Shown here: positions 20,701 to 52,700 of the stretch, piece after piece
Numbering within the stretch: the first letter of the stretch is position 1
How the letters are laid out: every line of letters starts with the position of its first letter
Assembly: GCA_905178155.1 (NCBI GenBank)
Contig: CAJINV010000002.1
Span: 12,828,387-12,892,386, forward strand
Length of the DNA stretch: 64,000 nt
Direction: 5' to 3'
Source of the DNA: Amoebophrya sp. A120
Lineage: Eukaryota > Protista > Dinoflagellata
Program-made: the position numbers and the translations under genes
Notes under the pieces: generated by a model
What the model saw: only the letters and a program-made list of their open reading frames with translations
What the model was told of the DNA's origin: nothing
The model's database searches: none

Positions 20701-23700
20701 ATGAAGCAGAAGCGTATACATACTAGTACTTGTTGAAGATGAAGAAGTTCAGTGAAGATCTATCAATTACTCCTTGTCACGTCTTTTCAAAAATCCTGAT
20801 AGGTCCACCCTTGAATTTTTTGCAAAAAAACGGACGCGTATGAGGCCGTCAAGTACTTATTTTAAAACTACTTAGAAAATTTCATTTTGGTAGCTAGGAC
20901 CGCACTTTTTTTTGTATGAAAGTTGACTACTTCATTTTAACTAGCTAGATCAGGAGCATCTTCGGTCACGGATGCGTCCCGCGACGCGGCGCAGACAAGT
21001 CGGAGGAGCAGCGACAGAGGCCATGATTTTGGTATGTGTCCGGGAACGTAACTAAGGCCTTAGATCTGGAGGACACGAGCCTCCTGCTGCAGTACTCGGT
21101 TGAGTTGACCTGTGGATGATTGTCGGTGAGTGGTGTTTTCGATCAGCCTGATGATAAGCGTAAAGCGCACAGCATACGGATTGGAAATTTACGAACCTAC
21201 GGCGATCATCATTTCTTGCTTGCTGATGAGTTTCAACATCTCCAGGGCTCCGGAGTGGTAGTAGATCACTGTGCCCCTACTTGCTCGTCTTTCTTAGTAG
21301 TGCCTTCGCTGAGATTTTAGATCTTGGCCGCGCCGCGAAACCAGCAGGCATGGGAACGCAGCCACGGGAGATCGAGCGGGCGTGCTTCGGCATGTTCAGA
21401 GCCGCCATTGCAGAGCACTTCGAGGTGCGGCGGGTTGGTGAGCTTTCCGCTGATATCATCACTCGCCCGCATCACGTTATGATGATCAACGGCGTGGAGT
21501 GGAAGCACTGGCTTCTGATCCAGTTCAAGGCTGGGACGGAGCGAAACGGAGCGTGGGTTCGTCGCGCCCGCAGCTGCTTGGTACATCACAAGAACCAGCA
21601 CCATGGTCACGCGCTCGTGGGAATGTGTCACAACAACCCTGACGAAGTGCTGGTCGAGACGCGCAGCCGCGCAGACCTGCCGAACCTCCTGTTCTCGGTG
21701 TGGATGGATCCGCACGCTACGCGCTTCGATGGTGAAGCTGACCTGCTATTCGCGTACTCGCCCGAGACGCTTGTGGAACGGAACGCGCGGCGCCTGTTCT
21801 GGTTGACGATCCGGAACTCCGGCTTATCGTACCGGCTGTCCGAGGACGAAGGCACCCCGATTGATGGGTATGCAAACTGAAAGGCACAGAAACACACGCG
21901 GGCAGTCTGTGAAAAAAACATACTGCGATACTCCTGTATCTGTCATGCGAAATAAAACTGCGCCAAGACATGCCCTCGTGTGTTTCGCTTCTTTCTCATT
22001 TGCATACGTAGTACATCCGGTTCGATGCCGACCCAACCGGCAATGAGTACAGCGCTCAAGAAAAGGCGTTGTCGATTCGGAAGGAGCAGGGGCAGGCGGT
22101 TGGCTTGCGCTGCACGATGCGGAGGTGCGTGCTTCTGATGCGTGTCGCTCGAGCCCTGGTATGCACTACTGTTTGCGAAAGGGTCGCGCAATGTAATGCT
22201 TTATTTTAATATTAAAACTATCAGGACCAAAAACGTCCCGCACGACGTCAACGACGCCGACTTCCTTCTCTTGCACGCCCGCCGGGACCCCAAAGACAAA
22301 ACGTTCTCCGGTCTTGCTGGGTCGATGCTGGTGCCGTGCCAGGTCTTGGCCGACCTCGGCATCGTCAAGTGTGAGGACCGGTAAACAAGTAGTGACGCCA
22401 TTGCTATAGAATTTGTCATGCGTATATGCTACCACACTACACCGCACCAAAAACTATCAAGCACTTACTTGTTCAGGGGATCGATTGGGCGCGCCATCAT
22501 GTCGGTTTATCCGAACGCGCCGGGTGTGCGTGTGAACCGCAGCGGTGTGTTGGAAGGGTTTTACGTTTCGTGCCACGACCAGGATCAGGAATACTTGGAC
22601 AAAATGAAACAGACGACTTTGAACTACGGGAACGGCGTGTATGATCACCAGGGAAACTAACGACGAAGCCGAAGGACGACGAGAAGACACAGCAGGAACA
22701 CATTATCTACAAAGCCACGGATTTTGTACAAGGTGCCGGGCCACCTTCTTGGTTATTTTTCAAAGGATGTCACGCGGGTTCGTTTTTACAATTGAAACTC
22801 AAAAGAGGAGCTCACGTCATGATTTTTTATTTCCAGTAAAAAGCATAGCTCTAGTAGTGTTTTCATATCTCCATAAATAATTTGTTCTGTGAGGAGCTCA
22901 TCCCTCACAGCAGCGCGTACGAAAATAGTGCCGCCTTCTCGGTGGGAATCAATCACGGGTGGTATTTCATAAATATTTTTTAATTTTACTGCGCCCTGGT
23001 CTGATTTGCGCCGCTGTGCAAAGCAGCGACGTCTTCATCTAATTTTTTCAAACTGAAAAATAAAAATTGAAACTTGTCTCACCACAAGTAGTATCCACCT
23101 CTACAGCTGTTTACGATTTTTGCTGCAAGGATTTTCTAATCTGCATAACTGCCATTATGCAGCTTCGGGAATTTCTCACGCTAGGAGTTCTGCTTCTCCT
23201 TCAATAAATAAAACGCGAAGATGAAGCATTCATATTATTTTTTTTTCATAAAACAATTTGTGCTGCAGGTGTCGACAAAAGAATGTCTGATGCGGAGTGC
23301 GCACCAGACGAAAACCAAACCAAAGATAGAAGCATCAACAAGAGCATGACTATGATGATTCACATAATTACTTATCCGCTCCGCTTTTGCTGTTCGACTT
23401 CGTCTTCGACTTCTTCCTCCTCGGGGCGCCGGTGATGGGGGACGAGTGTGAGGGGGGGTATTCAAAGCTCCCGGCAGAGGCAGCGTTGTCGGACAAGCTG
23501 GCGCTCTTTTCCTCATCGGGTTCATTTTGCGACGACTTCTTGCCCTTCCCTTTCTTGCCCTTCCCCTTCTTCTGCTTCTTACCCTTGCCCTTGCTGTTTC
23601 CCTTCCCGCCCTTGCCGTTGCCCTTCCCCTTCTTCCCCTTTCCTTTGACCTCCACGCTGGCGCTCTCGGACTGCTTGCTTTTCTTCGTCGGTTTCTTTTT

Positions 23701-26700
23701 CGTCAGCTGCTCCGGTTTGTCATTTTTTTTCTTGACATTCATCTTCTTCATCGGCTGTTCATTCTTCTTCGCTTTTTTCACGACGATGCTCCGGGGCTTT
23801 TTTCCTTGCACGTGCTTGCGGTGTTCGATCCGGTTCGCGAGGTTGTACACGTCGTCCGGGATGTCCACCCGTTCGTACTGTTTTTCACCAGCAGCTGAAT
23901 CATACCGGGCCAGTTGCAAAGAGCCCGGCTTGAGGCCGAGCTCTTTGATGGCGTAGGGCACGAGACCACACACGATCTTTCTCTGGACATCCCCCGTGCA
24001 TTCGATCGACGGACACACCCAGACCACATTGATGGGTTTGTAGCTGGTGGGATACCAGTACATGCGGATCCGGTCCTTCAGTTTGCCCTGCGCCTGACGA
24101 TGACTGCGGAAAGCGCAGCAGATCTTGTTCTCCCCCTCGGTGTAGAACAAGAAGTACTCGTATGTCGGCTTCATGCGGCAGTCCTCGATGCGGTTTCCGG
24201 CATCCGTCGCGAACTTCCTCTGCACCTCCTGGTTGGACAAAACGCGGTCGGTGTTCGGCAAAACCGGAGCACTACTCAACCCCAGCGCATTGAGTTCCGC
24301 CGTGAACTGAACCTCGTCAACCAGATCAATCACCTTGCTCACACACTCCTCCGTCAGCAAGTCCTCCTGCTGCGCCTGGAACAACACCTTCCGGCTGTGG
24401 TCCGTCATTTTCTCCAGAATATCCTTCGAGAGCAACCTGGGGCACATCTCCGTCGCCTTCGAGAGGGCGCCGATCTGCAACTTCTTGGGCTGCGTGGTGA
24501 AATATTCGCATTGGAACTCACGCACGGAGATCCAGTTGGAGTCGCGGAGTCGGATGAAGGTCGTGCCCAGCATCACACGGTGCTCATTACGCACTCGGCC
24601 GACGTACAATTCGTCGTCCTCGTCGAAAATCCCCCAGGTGATCTGGAAGTTGTCGCCACACTGCGGAAACTTCAGGAGGATGGAGGGGCTGATGGGGTCA
24701 CTGTGTTCCTTCTCGCTGGTCATGTTGCACAAATAGAACGCCGTAGTATGAGATTGAAAAAGCAGTGAAGCTGGGGAGAAGAAAAATTTGTCATGCAAAA
24801 ACGCAGTAGTTTGCCATGCGCAAAAAAGGATCCACCAATCGTCGCGTTATACTCGAACACCAGCTCTGATCTTTCTATCCCATAATGGTAGTGACCGTCG
24901 AACGTGCGGGCATTTTTCTGGTACTCCCACCCCAGGATGTCCGCGTGGAAATTGCGCGAGTAAATCGGATCGTCGGGCTGTTTTGGAGTTTTGCGTGTTG
25001 AATCTACCGGCGCAGATGGAGTCATGATCAACCGACTACAGAGGACGATCGCAAACAACATCAAAACAACAACAACTACTGTACGTTTGTGCCGGTCCGC
25101 TTGTTCAAGTTAAACTCGGCGCACAGGCGGGTGCTAGTCGCGACCTTGAACAAGTACTCGTCCTCGTTGCGGTATTTGTTCATCGCGGTCAAAGCTTTCA
25201 CCGCCCGGAACCCGACATACTTCGGGCTGGGCGTTTTGTTTTTGGGGTCCTTCAAGTAGTCGCGCGCCTTCTTGTACATCGGGTCCTTATCTTTCCGGTC
25301 CCAGCCGGCCTGACAGATATTCTTCAGCCCTTTGAAAGCCTCCTGGATAGAAGCCTTCCGCGTCGACGGGTCCAGATACTTCGCTTCCTCCTTTTTCAAC
25401 TTGAATCCCAAGTCGTTGCCGGTCATGTCGTCGTATGCATTGCAAAAGTGTCGCGCCACAGTGTGCTGCATTACAGATTTACATGTTCTTTTGCATGACA
25501 AATCATCATCGTCTATATATATCTATATACGTGTGCTGATGCTTGGGAGTGCGACACTTTTGCAAAAGATAGTTCATCGGAGCAGTTCTCGATCAAAGTC
25601 TCCAACTCCATCGGCGACACGCACATGCTTCTCGACGGCTGCACCAGCGGCGGCAGGGCAAAACGGTGCTGGTTGAAGCGGTACTCGAGGAGGTTCAACT
25701 GCTTCGAAATCATGTGGCACAAGCCCGGGGAGTTGCGTAACGCCTGGAGGATGTTGGCTTCTTTGAATCCTCCTTCTGTGGTTTTCTCGTACAGGGGACC
25801 GGTCTAGATGACGCACTCGAGCCACCGCTCCAGGACATGGCCGGGCTCTTCGAAGCAGGAGAAAATCATGATCATGACCTGGCAGGAGATGGACAACGGG
25901 ACCGGGCAGAAGTCGAACAACTGACCCAACTGCTGGGGGGTAAACTTCTCCAACCAGCCGAAGTGCTGACACTTCCACAGGCCGTAGCTCGGGTCCAGGC
26001 ACTCGTGGAAGTAGTCGCTGATCAAGCAGGACAGCAGGATACACACTCCGCGCTCGTACATAGCGCCCTCGTGGAAGTTGTCGCACGTGAAGGAGCAGAG
26101 ATTGTTCCAGAACTTCCACTGGCCAGTACCGTAGATCATCCACAACAACTCCGGAGTTGTGTACATCTTTCCCAGATGCGCATCCTTATCGAAGTGGAGC
26201 TTCATCGTGTCGACCAAGGGTTGGCTCGTCAAGCACGGCGTCATCGACCCCCGCGAGTTCAAGTGCTCCAGCAAGAAGCTAAACTCGAGACGCTCCTTCC
26301 CCATCATCTTGCACATTTCCACGTGGTGCTGCGTGAAGTACATCGCGAACCACAGCAGCTCCTTCGGGTAGCCATGCCAGGTGACGTTCTTGCGCGGGTC
26401 CTCCGGCTGTTCATCGTCTTCATCCATCGGGTTGAGTTTATGCATGGGAAACGGCACAACGCATCGCATATTTGTCATGCAATTTTCTGCATATATATAT
26501 TACATATGTATAGATAGCAATATGGCATGACAAATAATTTATACTTATTTATGTATATATGCAGAAAATTGCATGACAAATGTTGTTTTTGCGTTGTATT
26601 ATTTCACGGATACAGCTCCTCCTCGTCTTCGACTTCGGGACTGTGCATGTCATGGCGCTGCAGGTATTCCTTCGCTCCCTTGTTACGGATCTCCTCGAGG

Positions 26701-29700
26701 ACACCGAAGTCGCCTTTTTCGTTCTCGACGACCCACCACGCCAGGACGAACTTGAAAAAGCCGCAGCGACCGTCGAGCCCCATCATGAGCAACAGCTCCT
26801 TGCGCCAGCGGGTTTTGTTCGTGTGCAGCATTTTCAAGCCTGTAGGTTTAAAAATAATATAAAACTTGTTTCTTTGGAAAAAATATAACACCAGACTCAG
26901 AGAAAAGAGCTGGCTGACCGACCCTCCGTGGCACGTGTTAAGTAGTTGAGATTTTTTGCCACCATACCGTCGCGGAAGCACCTCTCCTCGGCACCTCATT
27001 TTGGACGTCCAAATCTCAACTACTTAACACGTGCCGCGAAAATGGCACTTTGCATGACAGAAACCAGAAACCATCGGGCGAAGTCGTGTAGAAAATCCAG
27101 ACTTTGCATGACAGATCTACACGAGGAAGCCAGGCTTCCTATTGACAGTACTACTATTTGCATCAGCAGCGCCAGATATTCAATAATACCCAACTCCGGG
27201 GCTTCTTTGACGGTTTTCACTTTTGCGTCCCGGGCCATCTCCTCGGCATACTCACCCGGATCTTCGCCCGCCTGCCGTTCCTCTTCCCGCTTGATCAACG
27301 CCTTCACGAGCGCGTAAAAAAAGGCCTGATTTGCGCGGCTCCCCTGCGGTCCGATCATGAAATTGCGCCAGAGCAGCACGAATTCATGCACCTCCGGCCA
27401 CAAGTTGTTGAAATGGTTCGACAGCAAGTGCCCGCAGCACGACTTCCAGACCCCGGCGAAAATGTTGTGGAGCGTATGGAGAGAAAGCGAATGCTTTACC
27501 ACGGCGCGCATGACAAATTCTTTCGATGGCGCGCGCATCACAATTACCTTTCTTAATTTGTCACGCAGAGCATCATCTTCATCACCGCAGTTGCACAATC
27601 GCAACGCATTTTCGCTATACATTAGTCTGTCATGCTAGTCGCGTGGTAAAGCGTATTTTGCAGCGAGATAAATCAGCAGCCCAAATCGCAGATTCCCCCT
27701 ATCGCCAGACGTGTGCACTTCGAAGCGGCTCGACGGAGACGACTCAGCGTGCCGGTCCATAATATCGTCCGTGCTCGGATCATCCGGGTCGACATAGCAC
27801 AGCTTCAGTGCTTCGGGTCCGTAGAATGTGTCGGCCATCGCACAAAACGAAGTCCCCTCCTGCGAATACGGTTGGATTGGTTTTTCGGTTGAATATATGA
27901 CGACGATCGTGCAGATTTGTATAATAAAAAAAGTGCGTCACTACAGCTGCTCACGCATGGCAAGCCACTAAATATGCAAAAGCAGTACGACTCCGATGCT
28001 GATGGTATGAGTGCTTGCGTGCAGCATGGGAGAAACAGTCAGCACCGCGGCCGTGTGCGTCAGTGATTCCTTCGGCGCCAGAGCGCCCGCATTGACAGTC
28101 TGAAACGGGGCCTGGTTCAGTGTGATGCCCTTGTGCGTTCGCGAGCCCTTGATGATCGGGCGGGATTCGGGATTCAGGACTTCATCCAGGGAGTAGAACT
28201 GTGAGGGAGTTTGGGAAAAGATGATCACCGAAAGCGACGAAGCCGAGCATGGAGCACCGCAACTTCGTCAATCACTACCTATCATCTCAACTACAATTAC
28301 TTTCTTCCGCATGTAATCCCGTCTTGAAGCTAATGAGTCCGTCACTGGTGGAAACGCATAGCAACCTCGTCCCCGAGCAGCATCACACGTATGTCGAATT
28401 CATTTTTGCACGTCGACGCGAGGGGAACCTCGAAGACCATGCGAACATCTGTTGCAGCACCTCCGGCACAACAAGCGCGCCTCATGCAAGCCGTTATATA
28501 TCCGACTGCCCACCAGATCAGGACGAAGATGAGAAACCAAACATAAAAACAACTACAAAACAACAAGCACCGTGCAGCTCTTCACGTTTTCGCCGCGGGT
28601 TGTCGAGTCGTCAGAATTGTACTGATGCACGGTGCCCAAAAATCGAACCGCACGGCATTTGGATCATCTGGCGCAGATTCATCACCCAGTGCGGCGGGAC
28701 CTGGTAGACTTGCAGCCGCAGTAGACAACTCATCTCGAACCAGCATCGGAGCGCGTACATCTGAGTATTTGTAGGAAAGCCAATATGAAATGCATGACAC
28801 AATAGGGATGGAAATGCATGTCAAGCTGCAGACTTTTTTCATGCGGAAGATGACCATCATGAACTGTGCCTTGCATCTGTCTGTTGTATCTTCAGAGCCC
28901 ATCCTCCCCAGGTCCCTCTCCATCCAGACGGCGAGGTCATCGGACTTTTCCTTGCGATTCTTGATGGTAATCCCTTTGACGATATTGCGCCACCGGACGT
29001 TCCCAAATTTCGTCTCGCTGGTATCACCACTCAAACTGCTTGATGCGAAGACACAGATTTTTATGACTTTGAGATGATCACGACAACACGTCTCGCATGC
29101 AAGCACTTCTGCAAAGCAACTCTTCGCATCAAGGCGCTTGAGTGGGATAAAACAGGTCGGGATGATTCTCGGCCCACCACAGGACGCGCCAGCACTGATG
29201 TTTGTTGTTATTTTAGATTGATCTGATTATTTACAACCTACGCTGCATGATCATCGTTGACGCGAGCACGAAGATGATGGAGAAGCAGGTGAACAAGATT
29301 GATCATACCACGCCGTCCGCGTTGCCTCTGGTTCCAATTGCCGGCATGACGTAGCGGTGTGCCGACTTGGCCCAGTTTGGTACTTTTTTGTTGAGGAAGT
29401 AGCAGTAGTTGTTGGGATCCGGAGCAATCTTTTTGAGGTGGGCGTACGGTTTTCCGCTGTGCTCGTCCCGGTAAACGCGATCCATGGGAACATCGCGGGG
29501 CTGAAGGTATCGACCTTGATCATGTCCTCCAGTTGCTGCAACACGGCGATCCGCCTCCTGACCTCGACGGGGCGTGGCACAAGCGCGACTATCTCCATCG
29601 CCGTGCAGAAAAGGGCACAAAAGATAAGACTTAGGGGCAAGGGATAACAAAAGACGAAACGGGCATCATGTGGGACCTGTTACGTTTCTACACCATCGCG

Positions 29701-32700
29701 CGAAACCAATTTGCTGACAACATCTAGTAGAGAATCGACCCGGTTTTGCGATGACTATCTCGCTGGTCACGAATCAACTCTCGCCACGTCACGCACGGAT
29801 CGAACGAGCCCGAAATTATACAACTACGACAAGATGATGACTCTCGCGCGTCTGCTTCTCACGTACGGCAAACCGACCCTGCAGACACAGTTTTCTGCTT
29901 TTGGTAGACAAAACCGACGCCCAATCTCTCACGATTCTGCCGAACAATCAACGCAATATCATGCCGCAAGCGAAGATTTTCAGCGACAGCTATGTGGTAG
30001 CAGCAGCACACATCCACGCTCATTGAAAGCGATTCTTCTTCATTTGGGCTTCAATAGCGTCGCGCACGATACGAGTCCGGCCCTGAAGATTTAAAATCGC
30101 ATGACTGTTCATGGTAGGCGCAAGAACATTGATAGAGCTGAATACTATTTGTTTGTAGTGCGAAACGACATAAGCATCACAGTCAACGCACCGTCGGCAG
30201 CCGACGAATGCGCCTCCGCGATGAGACGCAAGATATAGACGGGCTTCCTAAAGTAGTAAATCACAAGTAGACTGCAATGCTCTGCTTGGAAGTAAAACTT
30301 TACTCACCAATAGATGTAAGCGCGCTGGTTCGCGATTCGAAGTGCAAAATACCGAGTAGAAGAGAGAACTACCGCGCTAGATGTTCAAGTGCCTGTGAGT
30401 ACTGGTTTTAGAAGAATCTAAAATCTAAAAATCACATCACTGCGCTGGCTGCGCCTTCTTCTTAGCATTCATCCTGCGCATCTTCTTCGGCTTCTCTTCC
30501 GACGGCTTTTTCTCTTCGTCTTTGTCCTCGTCCTTCTTCTCCTCGGACTTCTCCTTCTCCTCGGACTCGTTTTTCTCATCGGGCTTTTCGACGGGGGGAT
30601 CTTTGGTCAAGAAGTCGCCGATCTCCTCGTCATTCAACTTCACATCCTTCTCTTTCTTTGCCCTCGGGAAACACGAACTGCTCGCCATCGTTCACCGGCA
30701 ACTCGTCCTCCTTCCCCACTCTCGGCTTGCGCTTCATCGGCTGCGCCTTCCGCTTCGGCGTCTTTTTCTTGTGCTCCGGCGGCGGAGACTTTTTGACCTT
30801 TGGCGGATCCTTCGCGCCCTCGTCATCCTCCTTCTTGTCCCCAGGCGCAGGCGGATCCCCGCCTTCCTTCTTGTCGAACAGGTCCTTCTTCTTGAGGGGC
30901 GAGAACACCGGCTTAGACTGGTCGTGGCCCGCCGGCTTCTTGCCGAATCCGCGGGCGGCGACGTTGACCTGATTATTAAAAATGAGAGGGCTTGCACTTT
31001 CTGTAGTTTTTAGGTTTTTACAAAAGGAATCCCATCTACTTCTCGGTGGTTATCAGTTTCGTATGACGATCTTGTGGTGGAGCTGCTCATCATCTCCTGT
31101 ATAGTCTACTTGTTTACAAAAACCTACTTAACAAAAAACAGATAACACACCGTGCTGGCGGCAGCCCCGTTAATCGGAGAGCGGAAGCAGGACGGAGTGG
31201 GGATCTTCTGGCGGTACACCGTGCCGTAACCATTGTGGTCGTAGTCGTAATCGCGGTGCGGGTCAAAAGGACTCTTTTCGGGACCGCAGAATTTGCGACC
31301 GTAGTCCGGCAGCGCCGCCGGGTTCTCGCCCGGCACACGCGCCTTCTTGCACTTCAACAAGTACTGTCTCTTCTTAATCTCCTCTTCCTGCTTTTCGAGA
31401 TCCTTTTCTTCCGCTTCCTCATCTTGCAGCACCTTTTTGATGGCCTGGGCGAACTCGAGCTGGGACTTCATGCTAGCGAAGGCCTGCCCGGTGCCGCGCA
31501 GGGTGCGCTGGTTCCGCCCGGGGGCAACAGCGATGCGCTGGCATTAGTCGTTTTTGTCATTACTTAGCATAGTTTCTGGATTTGCACTTCATCATCTAAA
31601 GGCAAAAAGAATTTGCATGCGACCTACGTCAAGATATGAATATAAGTAGTACGGTGGTGGGCTTGATCTTCAGGCTTTCCAACAGCTGTTTCCACTGCTC
31701 CTTGTTTTCGATCTTCTGGGACACCTCGCGCAACGGGATTCCAAATCTATCCAACCGAAAACTTCCCAACTAGCACCACGCTCTTTTAGATGTCGCGTCG
31801 CGATTTATTCAGGCTGGGCATGACAAGTTCCAACATGTATACGAGAAACCTACTTCATGCGTTGCTATTGTGATGAGACGCACATCGCTGGTGCTAGTTG
31901 GTCTGCTTTTTGTTGGATAGGACACGGAGGAGTAGATGTCCTGGGCCTGCTCGATAGGCAGTTCGCCGAGGGCTGTTTTTTAAATTTATATTTATATAAA
32001 TAGCATGAGATCATGCGCGTTTGTAATTGTTTCATGATGTGGTCGAGATGATCACAAAAAAAACAAAAAGCACTTTCCTCCTTCACAGGCATCTGCTTCA
32101 GGCTGTGCACCGGAGTGACACCCTTCGCGTTCGCTTTGTTCCGCTGCCGATTGATTTTGAAAGCCTCCTCCCACAAGCACATGTCGGCCTCGGTCCAGTT
32201 CTTGGTGTGGTTGGCAATGGCCTCAACACTGCCAAGCTGCTTCGACGGAGCAGCACTCATCTTTTAGAAGAGGCGTTGGCGCGGATTCTAGAACCTACTC
32301 TCTCAATATCTAATACCAGGTATGTCGTCCTCCAGGGATGAAGACGCAAGGCCAACGAATGGCACCAAAAGAAAACCAAAAGCACAACGAGGATCCGAAC
32401 GACGAGGATAGCATCCGCTTTACATCTTCATCAACTTCGCTGAGCACACATCTTGCTTTCCATACTGCTGCGACAAAAGCCCTGCAGCGTATCAAGGTGC
32501 TATACTCTGCTTTGTTTTTGTTTTTTGGTTCACCTACTAGCGCTAAAGAAGACGAGCACGTTTTGTTTTCATGTCGTGTTGCTTGTTATTGCGTTCTACT
32601 TTTCAAACAGATCTTCGCCGACTGGTGACTGCGCGACCCGAAGTTGCAACATTTCGACGACCGGATGGGGCTTGAGGGGGACCTCGTGCAAAACCAAAAA

Positions 32701-34958
32701 GTTTTTGCGTCGCGGGACGCATCCGCGACCGAAACAGCTCCTGATCTAGCTAATCAATTAAATGCATGTTTTAAATAAATACATTTATGTGCGGTCCTAG
32801 CTACCTAAACAAAATTTTCTAAGTAGTTTTAAAGTAAGTACTTGACGGGCTCATAACGCGACGTTAAAGATGCTGAAGATTGATTGATGTCCTCTTGTCA
32901 GTGTCACTTTAACCAGTACCACGTCGTAGTGGGGCTTGTCACGTTCTTACGAAGAGCAGTTCTAGTAGTTTGCGTCCACCACCGCCACATCTAACCCAGG
33001 TTCCGACGCTGAGGCCAAGAAGTCGCTCCAGGTGCGTTCTTTGGAAGAGACGCGGCGGAAGTTCCAGACCGAAAAGGAGGCGCTGAACGCGATCGCGAAA
33101 CAGAAGTCCAGCATGTACAAGTGCATGATGTCCAGTAACAAGAAGGTCGGGGACCAGGACAAAAAGGACGGCGCGGTGCTGCAAAAGATCCGCCAGGCCG
33201 AGGGCAAAATTAAGCAGGCGGAAGTGCGACTGGAATCCGCGGCCAAGGGCGCGGACGCCAGGGAACAAGAGTACTACAGAACTGCTTCACGTGGTAGGTT
33301 ACCTTCAACTAGACTACCGTGCAGTTTGTTGCTATCTACTGTGGTTGTGAACTCGAGGTCCGTCATCTCCGCATTGGTTTTTCATCCCGATTCCATCTGT
33401 TGTGAAGCTCCTGCTGCGATGATGCGCGAAAAACACTGCAGCAAGCCTAAAAATTGCAAAAAGTGCATGCATAGATAAAAACTCCACAGCCAAAAAGCGC
33501 TGCTATCGCGTAACGTGGAGGCGGAGAAGGAAAAAGAGCAGCTGGAGGGTGATCTGAAGACGCTTGTGAAAACCCTGATCGACCTCGAACGCGCGAACAC
33601 CGAAAAGGAGCGGCAGGCCACGGCGAGCAGTCCGCTTTTCACCACCGGCTACAACCTGTTGACCCCTGAACAGCAGCAGCCCGTGGCGAACTACCTGTGT
33701 CCGACCCCGCCGACGCCGCTCCCTAAGATGTCCTACCTGGATATCAAATGTAAAAATGTCTGGGTCTGGAAACTTGTGATGCTAAAAGTGAATGGTAGAC
33801 GGACTGCAATACGCAGCTACGCATGACAAATTTTCTGGCTCCCATGTCTTACGTATTCCGCGTGGCAAGCTGCGTTTTTGCATGACAGGTAAGAGGGCCT
33901 TTGCGTGCCTATGCAACACAGATTCTCAAGTCATGCCAGACAAGCATGACAAACTTGCATTCTTCCAGACCCAGACACTTTTACAGTTGATACTGGAAAC
34001 CCAGCTGTCACACCTGCCGTTCGAGATACGCAAGAAAAAAACTGTGTAAGTGTAAATCTGTGATGCAGAAAATGCCAAACAGTTACACTTGTCATGCTCG
34101 ACATGCATGACCGGCTCGCTTCCTATGTGTTTTCCCTTTGTATCTGCGCATAACAAGTTTGTCCTGTCATGGCAGACAAACTTGTGATGCTGTTTTCCCA
34201 AAAGACTTACACTAACACAGTTTTTTTCTTGGATACGAGAAGTTGGTGTATCACAGCGGCGAGGACGTTTTGGTGGACCGAGAGCTGCTATCAAATGTAA
34301 AAATGTCTGGGTCTGGATGATTGCAACTTGTCATGCTGCGTCTGGATCATGCAGAAATTTGTGTTGCATGATTACCAAAAGATGTCCGCTCTTGACCAGT
34401 TTGATAGGGAGTTTCTCATGCAGGATAGGCATGATAGACAACCCCACAGCATCTGTCGTGCTAGGTGCTGCATGCCAGGCCTCATGGTATCTGGAAAATC
34501 TGCATCACAAATCTTGCATTTGAGACCCAGAGAGACACTTTTGCATTTGATAGCTGCTGTGCAATGCCGCGGTCAACAATGGGGGTGGTGGGAGCAGTAC
34601 CGACCTCGTGCACCCGCCCGGGTCCACGACGAAGATCAAGGTATACAAGCCGCCCGTGCTATCTTCATCAGCCTCCACGACGGCAGCCTCCAGTGCCCGG
34701 GTCAGCGCATCCACGATACACGTGCCGCCGTGCTGTATTCTGGACCTGATGCAGATGGCGCACGAGGAAGAAACCAAGGAAGCCGAGCAGTGGCGGTTCT
34801 TGGCGCAGACGAGCAAGCAGAGTTTCGCGCCGGTGCTGAAACTGGAGGACGACGGGAAGGAGGCAGTTGCCCGCAAAAAGGCACGGAAAAGGATTTTGTC
34901 GGAGCTAAGTTCTTTAACCGGCAACGTCGCGGTGGTGCCCAGTCCGACGGAATTGTGA
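17789..34958 (+). CDS. Low-complexity N-terminus plus coiled-coil protein, split by a 12.3-kb intron
   Basis: GT at 20714 and CTAAC-CCAG acceptor ending 32999 join EEMKQK-R-SDAEAKKSLQVRSLEE in frame; five introners removed in frame; TGA 34958. Confidence 0.75.
18801..19034. mobile_element. Introner family E (decayed)
   Basis: TIRs, flanks CCGGC/CCAAC; frame kept (VCRPQEQ). Confidence 0.75.
20263..20495. mobile_element. Introner family E
   Basis: TIRs, DR GAAGT; removal gives KSAKSTVMSLE. Confidence 0.9.
21350..22660 (+). CDS. Putative tandem PD-(D/E)xK-like endonuclease (transposon cargo; may be decayed)
   Basis: Motifs SADIITRP...WLLIQFKA and EGTPIDGYIRF...YSAQEK, followed by DADFLLL...MLVPCQVLADLGIV; spliced across TA...TA intron 21869-22006; recognised by eye. 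Confidence 0.5.
21869..22006. mobile_element. Short introner within transposon cargo gene
   Basis: TATGCAAA...TTTGCATA, internal TGTCATGC; element+5 nt removal gives IDGYIRFD. Confidence 0.7.
25434..25571. mobile_element. Short introner (family A-like) within transposase gene
   Basis: TATGCATTGCAAAAGTGTCGC...GCGACACTTTTGCAAAAGATA; removal +5 nt gives NCSDEHMTGND on minus strand. Confidence 0.7.
26439..26612. mobile_element. Short introner within transposase gene
   Basis: TAT...ATA, inverted ends, flanks GAGTT/CAGCT; removal gives EEELNPMDED on minus strand. Confidence 0.7.
30437..32260 (-). CDS. Lys/Glu/Pro-rich hypothetical protein (transposon cargo, frameshift near 30660)
   Basis: Exon-like ORFs 31865-32260, 31124-31471, 30630-30968 and 30437-30688 with coding-like composition. 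Confidence 0.5.
33742..33992. mobile_element. Introner family A
   Basis: TIRs, DR CTGGA; core similar to 1067-1318. Confidence 0.9.
34027..34235. mobile_element. Introner family E
   Basis: TIRs, DR CGAGA. Confidence 0.9.
34289..34552. mobile_element. Introner family A
   Basis: TIRs, DR GCTGC. Confidence 0.88.
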
Positions 34959-43740: not shown

Positions 43741-46256
43741 ATGCCCGAGCAGTCGTTAGCGGCTTTGTTGCAGGGAGCCTCCACGGCTTCCTCCTCCTCG
43801 TCGTTTAAGCACGTGTCGTCCTCGGACGGCAATGTAGAGGAGGAAGACCTCGCAACCCGCACGGATTACACGTTTCACTACCTGCCGGACGCGAAGTTTC
43901 GCATGTGGACCGACCGCGGGTTCCAGATGCTGCTCACCAAGTGGGGCTTCGGCGAGTCCATGTGCATCGGCAAGTGGAGGTTCGAGGAGAAAGTTGAGCC
44001 GGGGAACCGAGAGCAGGGCAAGAATTTGGTCACTAGCTTCTTCAAGTCCGAGACCAACCGCGCGGCGCTGCAAGCGCTCGGTGTGAGTGTGTTGGCACCA
44101 GCGAAATTGGAGGTGAGAACAGCGCCGGTTGCAATTGACTTCTGTTGTTTTGTACCGCTGGCACGTCTTCTGAGGCCGACCCGGTTAGGAGTGAGGGCCG
44201 TAGTGGTGCTTATGCTTGGTAGTCTCTCATAATAAGCACTTAGGTTTCATCTCGTTCGCGTATTGAGATGAAAGTAAAGAACTCTCTTTAGTGTTTCTGC
44301 ACTGAGCCGACCGCCCAACACTTCTCTACAAAGGTGGAAGTCGAAGACATATCAACGGCGGAAACCAGTATGCGCTTGTTCGAGAAGCTGGAGGAGTGCG
44401 GCGCGGTCGGAAAAACGGGGCACATCAAAGGCCGGCTGGACGAGTTTGTAAACGACGTCGTAGTTATATCCAAGGCAAAAAATCTGTCAGCGTAGGCGTC
44501 TTGTTGCGGTAACAAAATGACCACAAATTCGTTCTGCATGGCAGTGACATGCTCATCCTGTCATGCGCAGCTAGTACGTCGTGAAAACACGTATGAAGAT
44601 CGGACATTATTTGATTATGACTTCTGGCGAGAAAGAATGACAATTGTAACTGTTTCGCTTTGTCGTTTTCCGCATTACCGACTTACAATTCCTTACGCAT
44701 TTTTGCTTGCATAGGCTAACAGCTTGATTCGGGAGGTGTTCTACATGGAGGAAAGCGACCTCTACGACGTCTATACGGAGAAGGACCGAAAAGAGTTTAT
44801 ACTCAGGATATTCCAGCACCTGCAGATTGGTATTTTTTTCCAAGGTTCATGATCAAACGCATGAAGATCGATCCCTAGCGTCATCATAATAATCATCATT
44901 TAATTTTGCGCCTTTTATGATGATTTTCCCGATCATTAAACACTTTGATGTAGTACGCGCAAATAATTTTGCGGGAAAGTTGAAGTGGCCACTTCAACTT
45001 TCCTCGGATGAGAGAAGTCGAGGTGGCCACTTCGACTTTCCTCCTTTGCGGGAAAGTCGAGGTGGCCACTTCGACTTTCCTCGGATGAGAGAAGTCGAGG
45101 TGGCCGCTGCAAGTCGAATATGATTAAATCATATCAGAGCCACATCACCCATCGTTATGACCTGCGGGCGTGTGCTGTCACTGTGACGCGATTATGAAAA
45201 ATATACAAACACATAGGCGGCGCAACCAATCAATATGAGGACGACATCGGTGAGTACCTAAAAGCAACGAAAGCTTTGTACCGCGACTTTATCGAATGCA
45301 AAAATGCCTGGGTCTGGAAGATTGCGAGATTTGTCATGCTTGTCTTTAATGACTCTGGAACTTGTCATGCACATTAGCATTACCCAAGAGCCCCGTTTTT
45401 CTGTCATGCAGAAACGCAGTTTGTCATGCATCATAGGCAACACCTAGAAGCTCAGAAACTTGTTTTGCTGCGCCAGCACTTGTGCTTGTGGCCTCCCTGC
45501 TCATGATACGCCACCCGGCATCACAAGTTTCCAGACCCAGACATTTTTGCATTTGATAGACTTGGTGTCCGTACGAAAGAAGGATGACGGCGAGCCGGAA
45601 GTCACGTCCATGGTGTTTGAGGTACCAAGAATTCTATTTAATATAGAGGGGCAGGGGTGCGGAAGTTTAAGTTTTAAGTATTTCTACTAGTTTGCGGATT
45701 GCATGTTGTCCATGTGCATGATCTCCATGTCCAAAAGGCACGTTGGGTCGTGTCCTACTGAGTCAGAGTCTACTGTCGAACATAAACAAGCTATTAACCG
45801 AAACCACGCTTCGAGGTGACTGGGTTTAACGGCCAAAGAAACGGTGGCCTTTTCAAGCGGGACCACACGACGAATTATGAAGTGCACGAAAAATATCGTA
45901 CTAGTATAGATTGCATCACAAATTTTGGCAAGAAGAAAAGAGGAATTCGTAAAAATACTGCCTTGCCTTTACCTTATCCTTAGGAAGGAGATTTGTCATG
46001 CGTATTTGCAATCAGTACGAATGCGATACTTTTGCACAGGATACGGATTTCTGTTACCTGATTGTGGACGGTTTGCTGCGCCACGTCACTATGTGGAAGT
46101 TTGCGTACGAAAGTGCGTGGTGAACAAAGAAACAGTGCTGGAAAGCTCTTCTTCCTGCTGTGTCGTGATGAGGGTGCGCGCAAATTTTCGCTCTTGCAAC
46201 CATTCGCACTTCTATGCTGACGCTAGTTCTTGCACTTGCAGGTGCAGAGTTTTTGA
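43741..46256 (+). CDS. CFAP300: Cilia- and flagella-associated protein 300 (C11orf70 homolog); 3' end uncertain
   Basis: Spliced [64 protein letters not shown] matches the CFAP300 conserved block. Confidence 0.88.
44467..44713. mobile_element. Introner family E-related (decayed)
   Basis: TATCCAAG...CTTGCATA, flanks AGTTA/GGCTA; frame kept (VVVNSLIRE). Confidence 0.78.
44973..45105. repeat. Short array of 28-bp palindrome (same family as 49455-50020) in intron 44830-45216
   Basis: GAAAGT(T/C)GA(A/G)GTGGCCACTTC(A/G)ACTTTC x ~4. Confidence 0.9.
45290..45558. mobile_element. Introner family A
   Basis: TIRs, DR GACTT; removal restores conserved YRDLVSVRK. Confidence 0.92.
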
Positions 46257-46751: not shown

Positions 46752-49700
46752 ATGAAGCCGGGCTCCGTGGGTGGCGCGGGCGCGCGCCTAAACCACGGAA
46801 CGGGAGGCAATTCGGCGGCCAGTGCGCCCATAACTACTCCCCACCGCAGCAGCCCTCTATCCCAGGTCGCGGGAAACGCAGTGCTGAAATGGCGCGGCGT
46901 CTTCAATTCCGGAGGGTCTTCAAGCAGCACGGCGGAAACACCGTAAGAGGAACCTTGGTTGATAGATCTGCAAGAAGTTCATGACGCGTATGCTTATCCT
47001 TATGCTCGCGCGGCAGGTTTCATGTTGTAAGTACTTCCTCCTTGATTTGGTAAAAGTATCGTATACCAACTTTTATCTTCTAACAAAGCCCGGCTCCGTG
47101 GTAGGTCTAGGTTGGCAATTTGTTTCACGAACCACACCAACAGAGTTTTATTTGGTCTTCGTGCTGACAGCTACGCCTTGGACGACTTCATATACTTATT
47201 CATCATTCTACCGAAATAAACAGTCCTCCGCGCGTGCTCCCCGGAACGACCCCGGTGACTGGCACGACCAAGAACGGTAACTCGTTTTCCGAGTCGGAGG
47301 ACGCATCCGGCGGCGCGGTATCAAATGCAAAAATGTCTGGGTCTGGAAGAGTCATGCTGTTTTTGCATGACACAGCAGGTCTGGCATGGACGATCTAGCA
47401 TCACAGGTTTCGAGGAGCTTCCGCAATGCCCATGACAAATCCCCCATTTTGCTGGCAGAAAGTGGGCAGCTTCTGCTACCTATGCACGAGAAATTTTTCT
47501 GTGTTCTGAAATGCGCATCACAAGTTTGTATTCTTCCAAACCCAGACATTTTTGCACTCCATACGCGGCCACGAACAGCAACAGCTACAACGAGCACCAG
47601 GCGCTTTCCCGCGCCGCCTACGACCTGGACGAGCTTCTGGCGAAAGTAAACGCAGCAAAGGCCGCCGGGTTACCAGGAACAACCGGCTCTGGTACTTCCA
47701 CTGCGGAAAACGGAACTGGCGGTCTCGGCGGCGGGGATCATGGCACGACAATATCTTCAAGCGGCGGCGCAGCTGGAACAGGAGCAACGGGGCCTTTGCA
47801 GCCAGACGGGGCCACGACCGCAACGGGTGCCCCACATCAACACGTGAACATCGTCGGCGGCGGGACGAAAGTGCAGCTCGGCGAGCGCAGCAACCTGTTT
47901 TCGACCAAGATGGAGCCGCGACGCGGCGGCGCGAAGATGAAGCTGACTAGGCCCGGCAGCACCAACTCGTCGCAGGATCCGCACCAGGTGCTACCCTTAA
48001 GCTCGGCGCTCGGCGGGAGTAACAACAACAATAACAGCCACAATTCCTTTCTGAACGACGGCGGCGGAACAACCGGAAACCACCACCCAACGACCAAGCC
48101 GCTCTACGGAAATGGTGCACAGAACAACAACGGCCCCCGAGGGGCGCCGCGGCGGGCCGGGAACGCGAAAACGAACCTCGCGAACGGACATTTCAGCAAC
48201 TCCTCCAAGGAGTCGGACCACAACGCCAGCACCACATACAACACCTCGTCCTCCGGTGGGGACAGCATATCAAATGTAAAAATGTCTGGGTCTGGAAGAT
48301 TGCGAGGCTTCTCATGCTTGTCTGGCATGACTCTTAAATCTGTCATGCACGTTACCCAAGAGCTCCATTTTTCTGTCATGCAGAGACGCAGTTTGTCATG
48401 CAGAATAGGCAACACCTAGAAGCTCAGAAACTTGCCATGCTGAGCCAGCATTTGCGGCCTCCTCACGATACGCCACCCAGCATCACAAGTTTCCAGACCC
48501 AGACATTTTTACAGTTGATACAGCAGTTCCGGGGGCAACGTCTCGTCTTCGAACAACTCGCTAAACGGAGACGTGAACAACGGGTCCAGTATATCCTGAG
48601 TAAAAACGTCCCCACCCCAGAGTTGTCATGCAGATTTGCGACTACAGGAACATCTGGCATGCGCAGACCCAAGAGAGGCATTTTATTTTTAAGTCGTGTT
48701 TTGGTATTTGTAATGCTGAAAACAGGATGAGCAGATGGATTTGTGATGCGATTTCCGTTGCTAACCTGCACTACACTACGGACTGCAACTTGTCACGCAT
48801 GCGTCCCAAAACTTCTGGATTTGTGTTGCCAAGTTCCCAACTTGACTATGGGGTGGGGACGCTTTTACATATGATACAGTAACCAGCCGGGCGGGACGAG
48901 GAACAGCAGCACCGCCTCCGGCGGGGGGGGACCACATTTCGGCGGTAGTGGGGAGCAGCAGCCGGGCGGGGCGGGCGGCAGCAACCAAAACACGCGCGAG
49001 CGTCGGCCCTTTTCCTTCTTGAATCCGCCCGGCGGCGCGCAAGTGAAGAGGCGGAAGACCACTGTCTTCCGCGACGACCGCTCGCACATCGACTCGAGGC
49101 AAGTGGTGAACCGGCTGCTGCTCGCGAGCCTGGAAGCGGCCCAGGCGGGGGGAACAACTGCGGCGAATGTGAAACGCAAGTGCGGGTGGGCACCTCCGCC
49201 GACCGCGGTGCTGTTTCCTCCAAAAGACGACGACTTCCTGCTGTCGTCCGATGTCAGCAGTACTACTTAGAGCCTTATCGAACAAAAAAGGGTGGATACA
49301 TGTTGAATACAAGATCAATACTGCCACGAAAATCGAACAACGGCAGTGATCTTTTTCTGTGTTTCTTCCATCCTTCTTGTTTCAAGTATAGCTATAGTTA
49401 CTATACTGCTGGTCACCACCAGCAAAAAAAGTCCTGGTGGTCACCACCGGCAAAAAAAGTTGAGGTGGTCACTTCAACATTCCTCGGATGAGAGAAGTTG
49501 AGGCGCTCACTTCAATTCTCCTCCGTTGAGGGAAAGTTGAAGTGGCCACTTCAACTTTCCTCGGATGAGAGAAGTTGAGGCGCTCACTTCAATTCTCCTC
49601 CGTTGAGGGAAAGTTGAAGTGGCCACTTCAACTTTCCTCGGATGAGAGAAGTTGAGGCGCTCACTTCAATTCTCCTCCGTTGAGGGAAAGTTGAAGTGGC

Positions 49701-52700
49701 CACAGACATCAACTTTCCTCGGATGAGAGAAGTTGAGGCGGTCACTTCAATTTTCCTCCGTCGCGGGAAAGTTGAAGTGGCCATTTCAACTTTTCTCGGA
49801 TGAGAGAAGTTGAGGTGGCCACTTCAATTTTCCTCCATTGAGGGAAAGTTGAAGTAGCCACTTCAACTTTCCTCGGATGAGAGAGGTTGAGGTGGTCACC
49901 TCGATTTTCCTTCGATGAGGCAAAGTTGAAGTGGCCACTTCAAATCTGCTTCGATGAGGGAAATATGAAGTGGCGACTTCGAATTTCCCTCGATGAGGGA
50001 AAGTTGAAGTGGCCATTTCAAATTAATTTCCTTCCTTCGATGATTCAGCGGGCGCGCGGTGCTCGTTTGCCTTCGAATCTATGCAACGCCACTGGCTGCG
50101 TATGGGGTGAGTAAATGTGCGCGCGCACGAGCGCGCGCGCGATATTTTTTTGGTTCTACGGCTTGCCACAGCCTGGTGCCCTGTGTCTTGGTGGAATGAA
50201 CTAACTTTGCGCGCTTTTTGAACTTACTCCCTTGAATCCCTTGAAAAGTGGCGCTGTACTCCTACTCCCTTGGGTGGCGCCAGACACTAATAAACCTATA
50301 TAGTACGCACCAGGTAGACTTCCTTCCAGTCACCACCGCTGACAGATTCTCATCAAGAATGGAAGCCGCGTGTCCCCTTTTTTTAACTTCTCCACTTTAC
50401 TACAACAGGCGTCGATGGCCCCACGGCACACGGGCTCGGTTCCGGCGCGAGCGGGTTTCCTCAGGACACATCGCAACTTCTGGATTTCAGTGCGAATTTC
50501 GAATCTGCGAACCTGCTCCACGCCGCGCACGTGGAGGTGAATGGGGCCGAGGACCACAACAGCTCGCCTTGGATCACCCCTGGAAAGGAGGTGGAGACGA
50601 GCCACGTCGAGGCGCCGCACGGCATCGTCGCGGAGTACGAGCTGCAGATGCGCTCGGACTCGCAAGTTCCGATAGACCGGGCCACCTGCCAGTGGTTTCT
50701 GTTCGCCGTGAAGAACAAAGCGCCCGGGAAGAGCTACCGTGCGCGGATGAAGATCTGGAACTTCCGCAAGCCCAAATCCTGCTACCAGGTCGGGCTGCAA
50801 CCCTACATCTACCGCGTCAAGACCGGGAAGGACACCATCGACAACGTGTGGAGCGGCAGCTCCTGCCGCAACGTCGACTACGCATGCTACGACCCGACAT
50901 CGGCGTCGACAGGAGCCACCAAGGCAGATCCGTCGGGGCGGGGAAGATGGTACTTAGTTGATAAAGTGATGACGGAAAGCTAATTCGCATGCAGGAGCAG
51001 GACCACAAGGTCTCTCTCTGAGTATGTACTTAGATGTAGATTGAATAATTGCACATGATTCATGGGTCTCGTATGTAAAGAAAACCCGTAGAGGTCGTGA
51101 ACCGGGAAAGATATGATAAAGAAGACGGACTTAGGGTTCAAAAATGAAAGTGTGAAACCAACAGGGGTCCTCTCTACAACGTCGGGAACCCTCTCGGCGT
51201 CGAGAAGCAGCCGACCATTCTCCCCACCGGAGCGTACAGTGGCGACACTTTCCCCGCGCTTCCAAAGTCGGAATACTACCAGCTTTCCTTCGACGTGGAA
51301 TTCGAGCACGATGACGAAGTTGTCTTTTTCGCGGCCTACCCCCCATACACCTACACGATGCTGCTGCGGTTTCTGCGCGAAGTTGACCAGCTGAATTCCC
51401 CAAACATCGCCAAGAAGGAAATTGGCCGCACCCTGGCCAACATACCGGTGCCGCTCTTGATTGTGACCAACCCGAAGGTGCAGGGCAGCAGCAAGAAGGA
51501 CGTCGTCGTGATAGCAAGGCAGCACCCCGGCGAGTGCGTGGGCAGCTGGGCCGCCCAGGGCTTCATAAAATTCCTGATTGGCAACAGCAGTCTGGCGAAC
51601 CTGCTCAGGACGACGCACGTGTTCCACATCGTGCCAATGGTCAACGTGGACGGCGTGGTGTACGGAAACAACCGCTGTACCTTGCTGGGCGTCGATCCGA
51701 ATCGATGCTGGGTGGAACCGAATGCGGTACGTATTTTTAGACTTTGATTTTTCTGTCTAATGGAAAATCACGTCTATAAGATTTTGTAGATCTTTTTCGT
51801 GTTTTTCGATTTTTCATGAGACACGATCGAACTACCTTGGGAGCGCGTGCGCGAAGATTCAATTCCTTGTTAATTAAGAAACTACTACAAAGTTGTTCTG
51901 TGCTAGATGAACGCGCTCGTAGGTGACGATCATGAAGCTGCATAACAATCTGATAAAACAGGTCTTGCATCCTCTGGTGAGCAAGATCAAAGCGTATGTG
52001 AGTAGCTTGAACAACAGCCCCGGCACGAATAGCGGGAATAGCGGGAAATATCCCGGAGGCGGGAACTCGAGCGCGACCGCGACCAGTCAGTTCCAGGGCA
52101 CGGAGAAGATGCAGTCGGAGCTGACGTCGAATTTAACGCAAAAGTCCACCTCCGAGTGGGTGATGCAGAGCGAGAACACGCGAGCAGGCTTGAAGGACGT
52201 GGAGGACTTCTCGGATCGGGACCTGGAGTCGATCAAATCCGGGAATTACCTGCAGATCGACTACGACAACAGCAACGCGAACTCGTCCACTCTGAGCGGC
52301 GCCAGCATCTCCAGCCGGCCGAACACGGCGACCGCGACCACCGGGACGAAGAACGTGGTGCTGTTCCTCGATCTCCACGGGCACTCCGCCCGAACGCATG
52401 CTTTCCTCTACGGGTGTCTGCCGCAAAACATCCGGGTGAATGGGCAAAACATCACGCCGCCGCTGCTGCAGGCCGCGTTCCTGGAGGAGGAAACCAACAT
52501 CGAGCTGCAGAAGCAGCTACTGGGGAAGAAGTTCGTGGAGGTCACGGGGACCGGGACCACGGTCGTAAACAACGGCCTCGCGGCGGGAGGCGCGACGGCG
52601 ACCGGTGCTGGGGACGGAGCCGTGGGCGCGGGGATGGGCGCGGGGGCAGCAAATGGGACAATGAACAACAACGCAGGGAATACGGTAGGAGGAAGCGGGC

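Follow-up and report, generated by a model that had tools for sequence, protein, structure and literature searches.

In the hAT transposase Hermes the conserved motifs follow the order D, D, CxxH, RW, E, and hAT transposons usually carry short terminal inverted repeats (TIRs, ~10-25 bp) with a terminal consensus of their own, flanked by a target-site duplication (TSD) that is usually 8 bp. Groups with shorter TSDs, 5 bp in hAT5 and 6 bp in others, are on record (PMC12730594, which cites Kapitonov and Jurka, 2007). In the genomes of the dinoflagellate Amoebophrya, non-canonical introns number in the tens of thousands, and many of them are introner elements (IEs) bounded by TIRs and TSDs (Farhat et al., 2021). 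The same study, which reported no transposase for strain A120, argued that the introners had not been spread by such an enzyme. A search of a literature library found no paper combining Amoebophrya, hAT and transposon. Here we analyze a 64,000-nucleotide stretch of the A120 genome (contig CAJINV010000002.1, positions 12,828,387 to 12,892,386 of the forward strand), which we refer to as the window. It contains an element of ~12.02 kb between its TIR ends (20839-32855), with a large gene on the minus strand and a second gene, gene A, on the plus strand. We propose that this element belongs to a hAT-like two-gene transposon family that generates a 5-bp TSD, a reading to which we assign a probability of roughly 75-80%. 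We also consider it likely that the family is lineage-specific and consists of ~12-kb class II cut-and-paste transposons of Amoebophrya with two convergent core genes.

The assignment of the large protein draws on a structural model. The window exons were searched singly, and full-length homologues from other strains were used for folding; the protein modelled, P0002, is such a homologue (AlphaFold2 with 26 aligned homologues), and the model has a mean predicted local distance difference test score (pLDDT) of 76.9 and a predicted template modelling score (pTM) of 0.76. Its core consists of strands 81-86, 96-106 and 117-128, helix 139-159 and strand 202-207, which is the RNase H order beta1-beta2-beta3-alpha-beta4, with D87 and D208 at strand ends, followed by an all-helical insertion (residues 245-585, ~340 amino acids) and by E589/E593 at the start of helix 590-605. 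The modelled homologue thus has, as predicted, the DDE RNase H-like core with a large all-alpha insertion ahead of the Glu helix by which hAT transposases are recognized. With Foldseek, Hermes chains rank first (E=0.06, probability 0.96) and every non-Hermes match has a probability below 0.12. A wide VIA-align search against representatives gave Hermes a Z of 11.2 (364 residues), followed by ISCth4 (8.5), retroviral integrases (~8), TnsB (6.9-7.8), the P element (7.2) and Transib (HzTransib, 6.2), the rest of the list being mostly DDE transposases and integrases. In a second VIA-align comparison six Hermes entries scored Z 10.4-12.6 over ~360 residues, with residues 23-634 of the model aligned to Hermes 136-608, and the next entry scored 7.1. 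Because Hermes is the best structural match by a clear margin, we conclude from the predicted fold that the large protein is a DDE transposase whose nearest solved relative is this hAT enzyme.

The order of the conserved motifs agrees with this assignment. In P0002 numbering the invariant positions are D87 (in D-Y-S-T-x-R-K), D208-Q-x-S-x-E213, H234-R-x-x-N238, R320-W321, D521-P-x-x-G-x-x-E528, K560, E589 and E593; H234 is invariant in 15-19 homologues and R320-W321 is kept in 17-18 of 18-19. Across the family the first Asp lies in D-x-S-T-x-R-K and the second in S-D-Q-G-S-x-E, the overall order D / D / H / RW / E is that of hAT, and ~500 amino acids extend C-terminally beyond the E...E helix. 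We rejected the possibility that S-D-Q-G-S-x-E marks an integrase (rve)-like protein, as the spacing does not fit and integrases match the generic core only. The original prediction for this locus, made from its letters, was of a hAT-like transposase with D, CxxH and TRW motifs. The hAT-like part is borne out by the RNase H-like DDE fold predicted for the homologue and by the comparison with Hermes-type transposases that had been suggested as a check, here made with a natural homologue, P0002; as for the motifs, the His and the TRW fall on conserved family positions, whereas the Cys is not conserved and the D motifs of the window are weak.

The ends of the window element were read directly from the letters. 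ACGCG at 20834-20838 directly precedes TATGAG, and a second ACGCG, at 32856-32860, comes directly after CTCATA; a match of the 5-bp flanks alone has a chance of ~1/1024, and the long TIR is far beyond chance. Inside the TIRs lies a second, subterminal pair of inverted arms (20937-20987 and 32707-32757; 51 nt, 88%). The features of the two ends are as follows.

20834-20838, no strand: left TSD copy ACGCG, identical to 32856-32860
20839-20905, plus strand: left TIR, beginning TATGAG, 67 nt, 93% complementary to 32789-32855
20937-21040, plus strand: left subterminal region with the family-conserved motifs GTCACGGATGCGTC (20965-20981) and GCCATGATTTTGG, from the second arm pair and alignment with the C1 copy described below
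32707-32757, minus strand: right subterminal region with the conserved motif at 32713-32729, from the inverted-repeat arm and a motif search
32789-32855, minus strand: right TIR, terminating CTCATA, pairing with 20839-20905
32856-32860, no strand: right TSD copy ACGCG, read directly

The conserved 17-nt subterminal motif is found inverted at both ends of the window element and likewise, ~11.5 kb apart, on contig 1, and it also occurs in four more copies. A pattern search identified a second complete element at C1:1454829-1466587 (11,759 bp), whose ends are TAT...ATA and which is flanked on either side by ATGCT. Three short elements are bounded by the 28-30-nt termini of this C1 copy, with 0-3 mismatches in the 30 terminal nt; these derivatives of ~280 bp are known from terminal pattern matches and 8-nt flanks alone.

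C5:2767980-2768259, 280 bp: derivative with perfect TSD TTCTA
C16:974314-974593, 280 bp: derivative with perfect TSD AGTAT
C15:426883-427167, 285 bp: derivative lacking a TSD, one of its ends mutated to CAT

Judged by their termini, the C1 copy and the ~280-bp elements appear to form the classical pairing in which internally deleted derivatives accompany an autonomous element, and the C1 copy together with the derivatives that have perfect TSDs leads us to conclude that the family inserts with a 5-bp duplication. The C1 subfamily has, as in Ac/Ds-type systems, short elements with the termini and the TSD length of a coding element; for the window copy, no short derivative carrying its TIR was found in the 115.5-Mb assembly. 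The end signature extends to other copies. All six copies with a readable gene-A-side end start with TAT and have ordered subterminal motifs ~510 bp before gene A, and the opposite (gene-B-side) end of one further copy also begins TAT, so that, with the right end of the window element, eight of the eight autonomous-copy ends read begin in this way. The ACGCG duplication, the TAT...ATA termini and the 67-bp TIRs of the original prediction are therefore confirmed, with identical flanks, and its description of the element as autonomous in type holds for a two-gene family, another member of which, the C1 copy, shows a 5-bp TSD and short derivatives of its own. At the DNA level the window copy is single-copy. 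In a DNA search of the assembly (401 contigs) its 172-nt end matches only its own two ends, and its interior matches only low-complexity stretches elsewhere. It has no short derivatives and has an in-frame TAG (see below), and its TIRs have diverged to 93%; it is therefore probably inactive. When the element is removed in silico, no long open reading frame (ORF) spans the junction and no obvious exon is seen at the insertion site.

By homology, the minus-strand ORFs of the window element are exons of one large gene split by short introners, a conclusion we draw because full-length homologues, 1100-1650 amino acids in length, join all of the blocks into one polypeptide. Specifically, a profile built from other strains only matches the window in order at 27475-27200, 26430-25867, 25800-25573, 25423-25097 and 24669-23674, and the N-terminal profile matches, also in order, at 29665-29306, 29226-28585, 28663-28556, 27937-27638 and 27634-27023, while iterated block profiles recover the window ORFs 29306-29665 and 27023-27634. 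Upstream of the paralogous ORFs, conservation among the copies extends over >5 kb. The parts of the gene, with E values from profile hidden Markov model (HMM) and other searches, are listed below.

23371-24846, minus strand: last long exon, with the C-terminal beta domains and a lysine-rich tail (cross-species HMM 24669-23674, E=7e-36; tblastn to the C-termini of other copies)
25097-25423, minus strand: transposase exon, profile positions 557-669 (cross-species HMM, E=2e-8)
25434-25571, no strand: 138-bp TAT...ATA introner inside the transposase gene (end scan; 131-nt gap, 25441-25572, between contiguous protein-alignment segments)
25573-25800, minus strand: exon containing Y-E-K-T-T-E-G-G-F-K, the invariant E...E motif and candidate site of the third catalytic residue (HMM, E=4e-4)
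25804-25806, minus strand: in-frame TAG directly upstream of the E motif, likely inactivating (two same-frame ORFs split by one stop, profile positions 233 to 238)
25807-26499, minus strand: exon of the helical insertion domain with W-x-G-Y and D-P-x-x-G-L-W motifs (paralogues at ~11 loci; HMM 26430-25867, E=1.4e-27)
26769-26846, minus strand: exon with TRW (~26800), homologous to the family RW/RF motif (match to the C17 copy at E=1e-4; alignment of block b11)
27200-27475, minus strand: exon containing C-C-G-H-L-L-S-N, whose H-x-x-x-N is invariant and follows the second D, and also G-P...N-Q (HMM, E=1.5e-16; E=3.6e-8; block b10)
27695-27862, minus strand: probable exon with the second catalytic Asp, S-G-D-R-G (~27700) against the family S-D-Q-G-S (weak collinear HMM, E=0.28; motif taken from the alignment)
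28568-28627, minus strand: probable exon of the first catalytic Asp, in D-D-S-T-T-R where the family has D-Y-S-T-V-R-K (weak collinear HMM, E=0.076)
28828-29515, minus strand: N-terminal transposase exons, blocks b5-b7 (E=1.4e-5 and 3.7e-3; collinear with the N-termini of homologues)
29700-32700, minus strand: upstream internal region with ORFs 31868-32263 and 31127-31543 and a K/E-rich stretch at 30440-31049 (positional counterpart of blocks b1-b3)

The ORFs of the 29700-32700 region have no Pfam match and no detectable homology to other element copies; the region occupies the position of three conserved blocks (b1-b3) and a low-complexity linker in the C14/C3 copies, and it is possible that it represents extra 5' exons or a third gene. 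The 138-bp element at 25434-25571 is placed, between contiguous alignment segments, as an introner acting as an intron would be. The TAG at 25804-25806 likely makes the window copy defective, unless it is an assembly error. The CCGHLL ORF (27634-27023) was first read as unconserved, since a whole-genome protein search returned only itself, and iterative profiles showed it to be a diverged homologue of a conserved block; L-L-G-D-E-V (~28350) was dropped as the first Asp, as the profile puts that residue at 28627-28568; and an alignment seeded on the 378-amino-acid ORF of C12 misplaced short exon rows and was discarded. As a separate observation, stop-to-stop ORFs in 21800-29300 and among L017-L042 often begin or end with the peptides F-V-M-H/R, C-M-T-N or H-D-K-F, which are translations, in either orientation, of the introner-internal motif ATTTGTCATGC and serve as a practical marker of exon/introner boundaries.

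The family is widespread in Amoebophrya. A six-frame comparison showed that ORF 25807-26499(-) has diverged paralogues at ~11 places in the A120 genome, and protein identity among the copies within A120 is only 20-49%. When the long-exon profile was compared with 1.84 billion proteins there were 29 matches, and all 18 that were looked up (18/18) are from Amoebophrya: strain AT5.2, strain A25 (an unnamed product, CAD7963427.1) and strain Ameob2 (a transcript, MMETSP0795). The transcript means that the large gene is expressed in at least one strain, where splicing yields one long ORF. The AT5.2 cluster representatives looked up (16/16) are distinct homologues of the large protein, each in its own 50%-identity cluster, which suggests a large, old transposase-gene family in that strain. 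One cluster among the matches (P0001-P0029) includes the MMETSP0795 transcript. A word-indexed protein search with an intact 581-amino-acid paralogue returned nothing, and in a search of the ESM Atlas with an 820-amino-acid paralogue all scores were below 0.9 and therefore uninformative.

Wherever the transposase gene is found on the minus strand, gene A lies downstream of it on the plus strand, and at least five other genome loci have gene A in the same convergent position, facing the transposase gene (tblastx, tblastn). In the AT5.2 strain the homologues of gene A (g6840) and of the transposase (g6839) have consecutive gene numbers. In the window gene A is laid out as follows, with zero internal stops in its exons.

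~21350-21877, 22030-22134, 22217-22381 and 22469-22585, plus strand: gene A, a PD-(D/E)xK-fold nuclease gene of four exons (tblastx/tblastn to five other loci)
21868-22007, no strand: short hairpin introner splitting gene A exons 1 and 2 (inverted repeat; coincides with the protein-alignment gap)

The product of gene A is ~320-480 amino acids long, and its N-terminal domain has the nuclease fold. The model of this domain (residues 1-140, pLDDT ~88) has the alpha-beta-beta-beta-alpha-beta core, the Asp in strand 2 and the (D/E/Q)-x-K in strand 3 that define the PD-(D/E)xK superfamily. With VIA-align it scores Z 8.9 to I-Ssp6803I and 8.5 to Hjc, the top ranks being mostly PD-(D/E)xK nucleases, Foldseek matched it to the nuclease domain of SPARDA systems, and Pfam gave a weak match to DUF4365 (E=0.027). 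Gene A is a conserved second core gene of the element family and, on its predicted fold, encodes a PD-(D/E)xK nuclease. D35 and Q59-x-K61, together with a second motif, D188-G...Q-E-K, are invariant in 11 sequences from strains A120 and AT5.2. This conservation across strains with intact catalytic residues argues that the product is an active nuclease needed by the element.

We put forward the following hypothetical mechanism for the family. The transposase, by inference from hAT biochemistry, would bind the TAT-initiated TIRs and the subterminal motifs, and, by analogy with Hermes, the element would be excised by double-strand breaks that leave a hairpin on the flanking DNA. Integration would proceed by a staggered attack in which a stagger of 5 bp gives the 5-bp duplication, and the transposase may act in trans on the short internally deleted derivatives. 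The nuclease could be a conserved accessory with a possible role in second-strand or hairpin processing, in donor repair or in a Tn7-like division of labour.

Any assignment to hAT must accommodate several observations that weigh against it or against its extension to the window copy. Pfam searches (E up to 0.1-1) of individual ORFs or exons, in sets of 10, 8 and 10, and of ten full-length homologues found no hAT dimerisation domain (PF05699), BED domain or hAT RNase H model, and the family profile matched no PDB sequence and no Hermes chain. The Cys of CxxH is not conserved in the family and RW is RF in several A120 copies; the window's own copy reads C-C-G-H and T-R-W. The two Asp motifs of the window are weak HMM matches, the TAG interrupts its gene in otherwise gapless homology, and the fold was predicted for a homologue of a different strain, not for the window protein. 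Three small RNA runs with the same species label gave 0 reads on 23300-29299, though this run set does not serve as an expression test. The TIR is 67 nt long and the family termini are TATGAG, TATAAC and TATGGC; TATGAG and TATAAC appear to lie outside the usual hAT end consensus. The window copy, the C1 copy and two of its derivatives have a TSD of 5 bp instead of 8 bp, a length compatible with hAT only through the hAT5-type exception. Membership of another DDE superfamily, or of a new one (Mutator/IS256-like, Transib-like, P-like or a hAT sister yet to be named), with the Hermes match reflecting only a layout shared by DDE enzymes that contain a helical insertion, would agree with the lack of Pfam and PDB sequence matches, the Z scores of ISCth4, the P element and Transib, the 5-bp TSDs that Transib also makes (PMC1131882), the C-terminal extension, the partner nuclease gene, the long TIRs and the non-hAT termini. 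We regard it as unlikely, since Hermes aligns over ~360 residues, including the insertion domain, at 3-5 Z above other DDE enzymes and with two aligners, the motif order fits hAT, and hAT5 makes 5-bp TSDs. It is improbable that the two genes are a domesticated host pair that no longer transposes, with the window element as a relic. The low protein identity among A120 copies, the annotation of homologues as ordinary genes in three other strains, one of them transcribed, and the stop codon and imperfect TIRs of the window copy are what domestication would give, but two copies keep TIRs and perfect 5-bp TSDs, the near-identical termini of the three derivatives imply fairly recent mobilisation in trans, and the many dispersed copies (~11 A120 loci and 16 distinct AT5.2 representatives) are typical of a mobile family. 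Finally, the single-copy state of the window element could suggest that there is no mobile unit at all, only host genes between unrelated inverted repeats. We find this scarcely credible, as the C1 copy repeats the gene content, order, size (11.76 vs 12.02 kb), subterminal motifs and TSD length, and the distance from terminus to gene A is conserved in six copies.

The hAT-like reading bears on how introners spread. Scanned for elements of 60-800 bp whose TAT...ATA ends match, the window yielded 21 candidates, of which 15 show an exact 5-bp duplication; the rule that the original prediction had seen in about 30 small elements is real, and about 15, not 30, are verified. TAT...ATA ends with a 5-bp duplication are common to the coding elements, their derivatives and the intron-forming mini-elements of the window, and it is because this rule is shared that we link the family to introner mobilisation. 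We give even odds to the suggestion, which is drawn from these end sequences, that the element family mobilises most introners, and among candidates for the enzyme class responsible we currently rank this family first. Beyond TAT, seven autonomous ends from six copies showed no significant similarity to ten window introner ends (best pair p ~0.007 before correction, 70 comparisons), and a coding copy sharing TIRs with an abundant introner family, for which the original prediction had recommended a search, was not found among the six copies whose termini were compared. Its view that the window element is a relative and not the direct parent of the introners has held up: no derivative has the window TIR, and the termini are unlike those of the window introner families beyond TAT. 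Gozashti et al. (2025; PMC12130899) derived A120 introners from several classes of transposable element, with integrase-like TIR elements among them, left most introner families unclassified and did not mention hAT; other transposases with ~5-bp TSDs may be present in A120. It is conceivable, if somewhat unlikely, that the hAT-like family is real while the abundant introners are moved by another transposase, for example that of the integrase-like TIR elements, and that the shared signature is a coincidence of stagger length or the mark of a different, related enzyme. The dissimilar termini, the lack of short derivatives of the window element, the mere three of the C1 copy and the integrase-like TIR family all speak for this, but the same rule holds for the window copy, the C1 copy, two of the three derivatives and 15 small elements, all eight autonomous ends read begin TAT, and, as TIRs normally differ among subfamilies, the non-match in six of ~11 copies leaves a match elsewhere possible.

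A more far-reaching proposal is that the element family supplies the autonomous machinery so far missing for all Amoebophrya introners of the non-canonical TAT...ATA / 5-bp class, and that its nuclease partner recognises the introner-TIR hairpin and aids precise removal at the DNA or RNA level. The PD-(D/E)xK fold of the gene A partner is shared with Holliday-junction resolvases and tRNA-splicing endonucleases. We regard this proposal as a long shot; if the nuclease-removal part were true, this would be a transposon with its own intron-removal nuclease, which would explain the tolerance of introns without GT-AG ends. Elsewhere in the window, a 17-mer at 48792-48808 resembles the subterminal motif with 2 mismatches, which may be chance; the surrounding 609 bp (48268-48876) are a candidate composite of TAT...ATA elements. 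The region 49495-50024 contains dense nested inverted and tandem repeats of ~50-90 nt that are unrelated to the element, and at 44980-45112 there is a 62-nt near-perfect hairpin (77% complementary, 9-nt loop).

The family described here was previously hidden, too divergent for domain searches and with a gene chopped by introners. It is the first concrete candidate for an introner-spreading enzyme, and the named genes, putative catalytic residues and natural substrates now make the question testable. Eukaryotic DNA transposons would also gain a hAT-like lineage that is very divergent and whose nuclease partner looks obligatory.

The likenesses and differences to known systems place the family as follows. 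With Tn7-like elements (TnsA and TnsB) it shares the pairing of a DDE enzyme with a PD-(D/E)xK nuclease of the D...Q-x-K type and a 5-bp TSD, so that by analogy a division of labour with one protein per strand is possible; Tn7-like elements, in contrast, are bacterial and have TGT termini where this family has TAT. TnsA was not among the 50 structural entries listed for gene A or among its Foldseek matches, no TnsC-like ATPase gene was found in the element, and TnsB matches only the generic RNase H core. Transib and RAG1 resemble it in the 5-bp TSD, the DDE core with an inserted domain and the hairpin chemistry on the flank, whereas HzTransib scores far below Hermes and Transib/RSS ends are of the CAC type. 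Introners, or MITE-type intron-generating transposons, occur in Micromonas, Aureococcus and dinoflagellates and include the Amoebophrya IEs (Farhat et al., 2021). The window element has its genome and the TAT...ATA / 5-bp rule in common with the small intron-forming elements, and its own genes are interrupted by such elements; they are non-coding and 60-320 bp long, whereas the window element is a 12-kb protein-coding element outside long ORFs. hAT5 has a hAT-type transposase and a 5-bp TSD, as here; it differs, in a comparison by description only, in having recognisable hAT sequences among animal lineages. We know of no partner nuclease gene in hAT5. Like the hAT elements Hermes, Ac, hobo and Tol2, the family is TIR-bounded and cut-and-paste in type, with short non-autonomous derivatives as in Ac/Ds, and it differs from them in its 5-bp TSD, its 67-nt TIRs, the ~500-amino-acid extension, the second, PD-(D/E)xK gene and the splitting of its genes by many non-canonical introners. 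What is new here is the combination of a hAT-like fold and motif order without sequence-level membership, a 5-bp TSD, long TIRs, the C-terminal extension and a nuclease partner.

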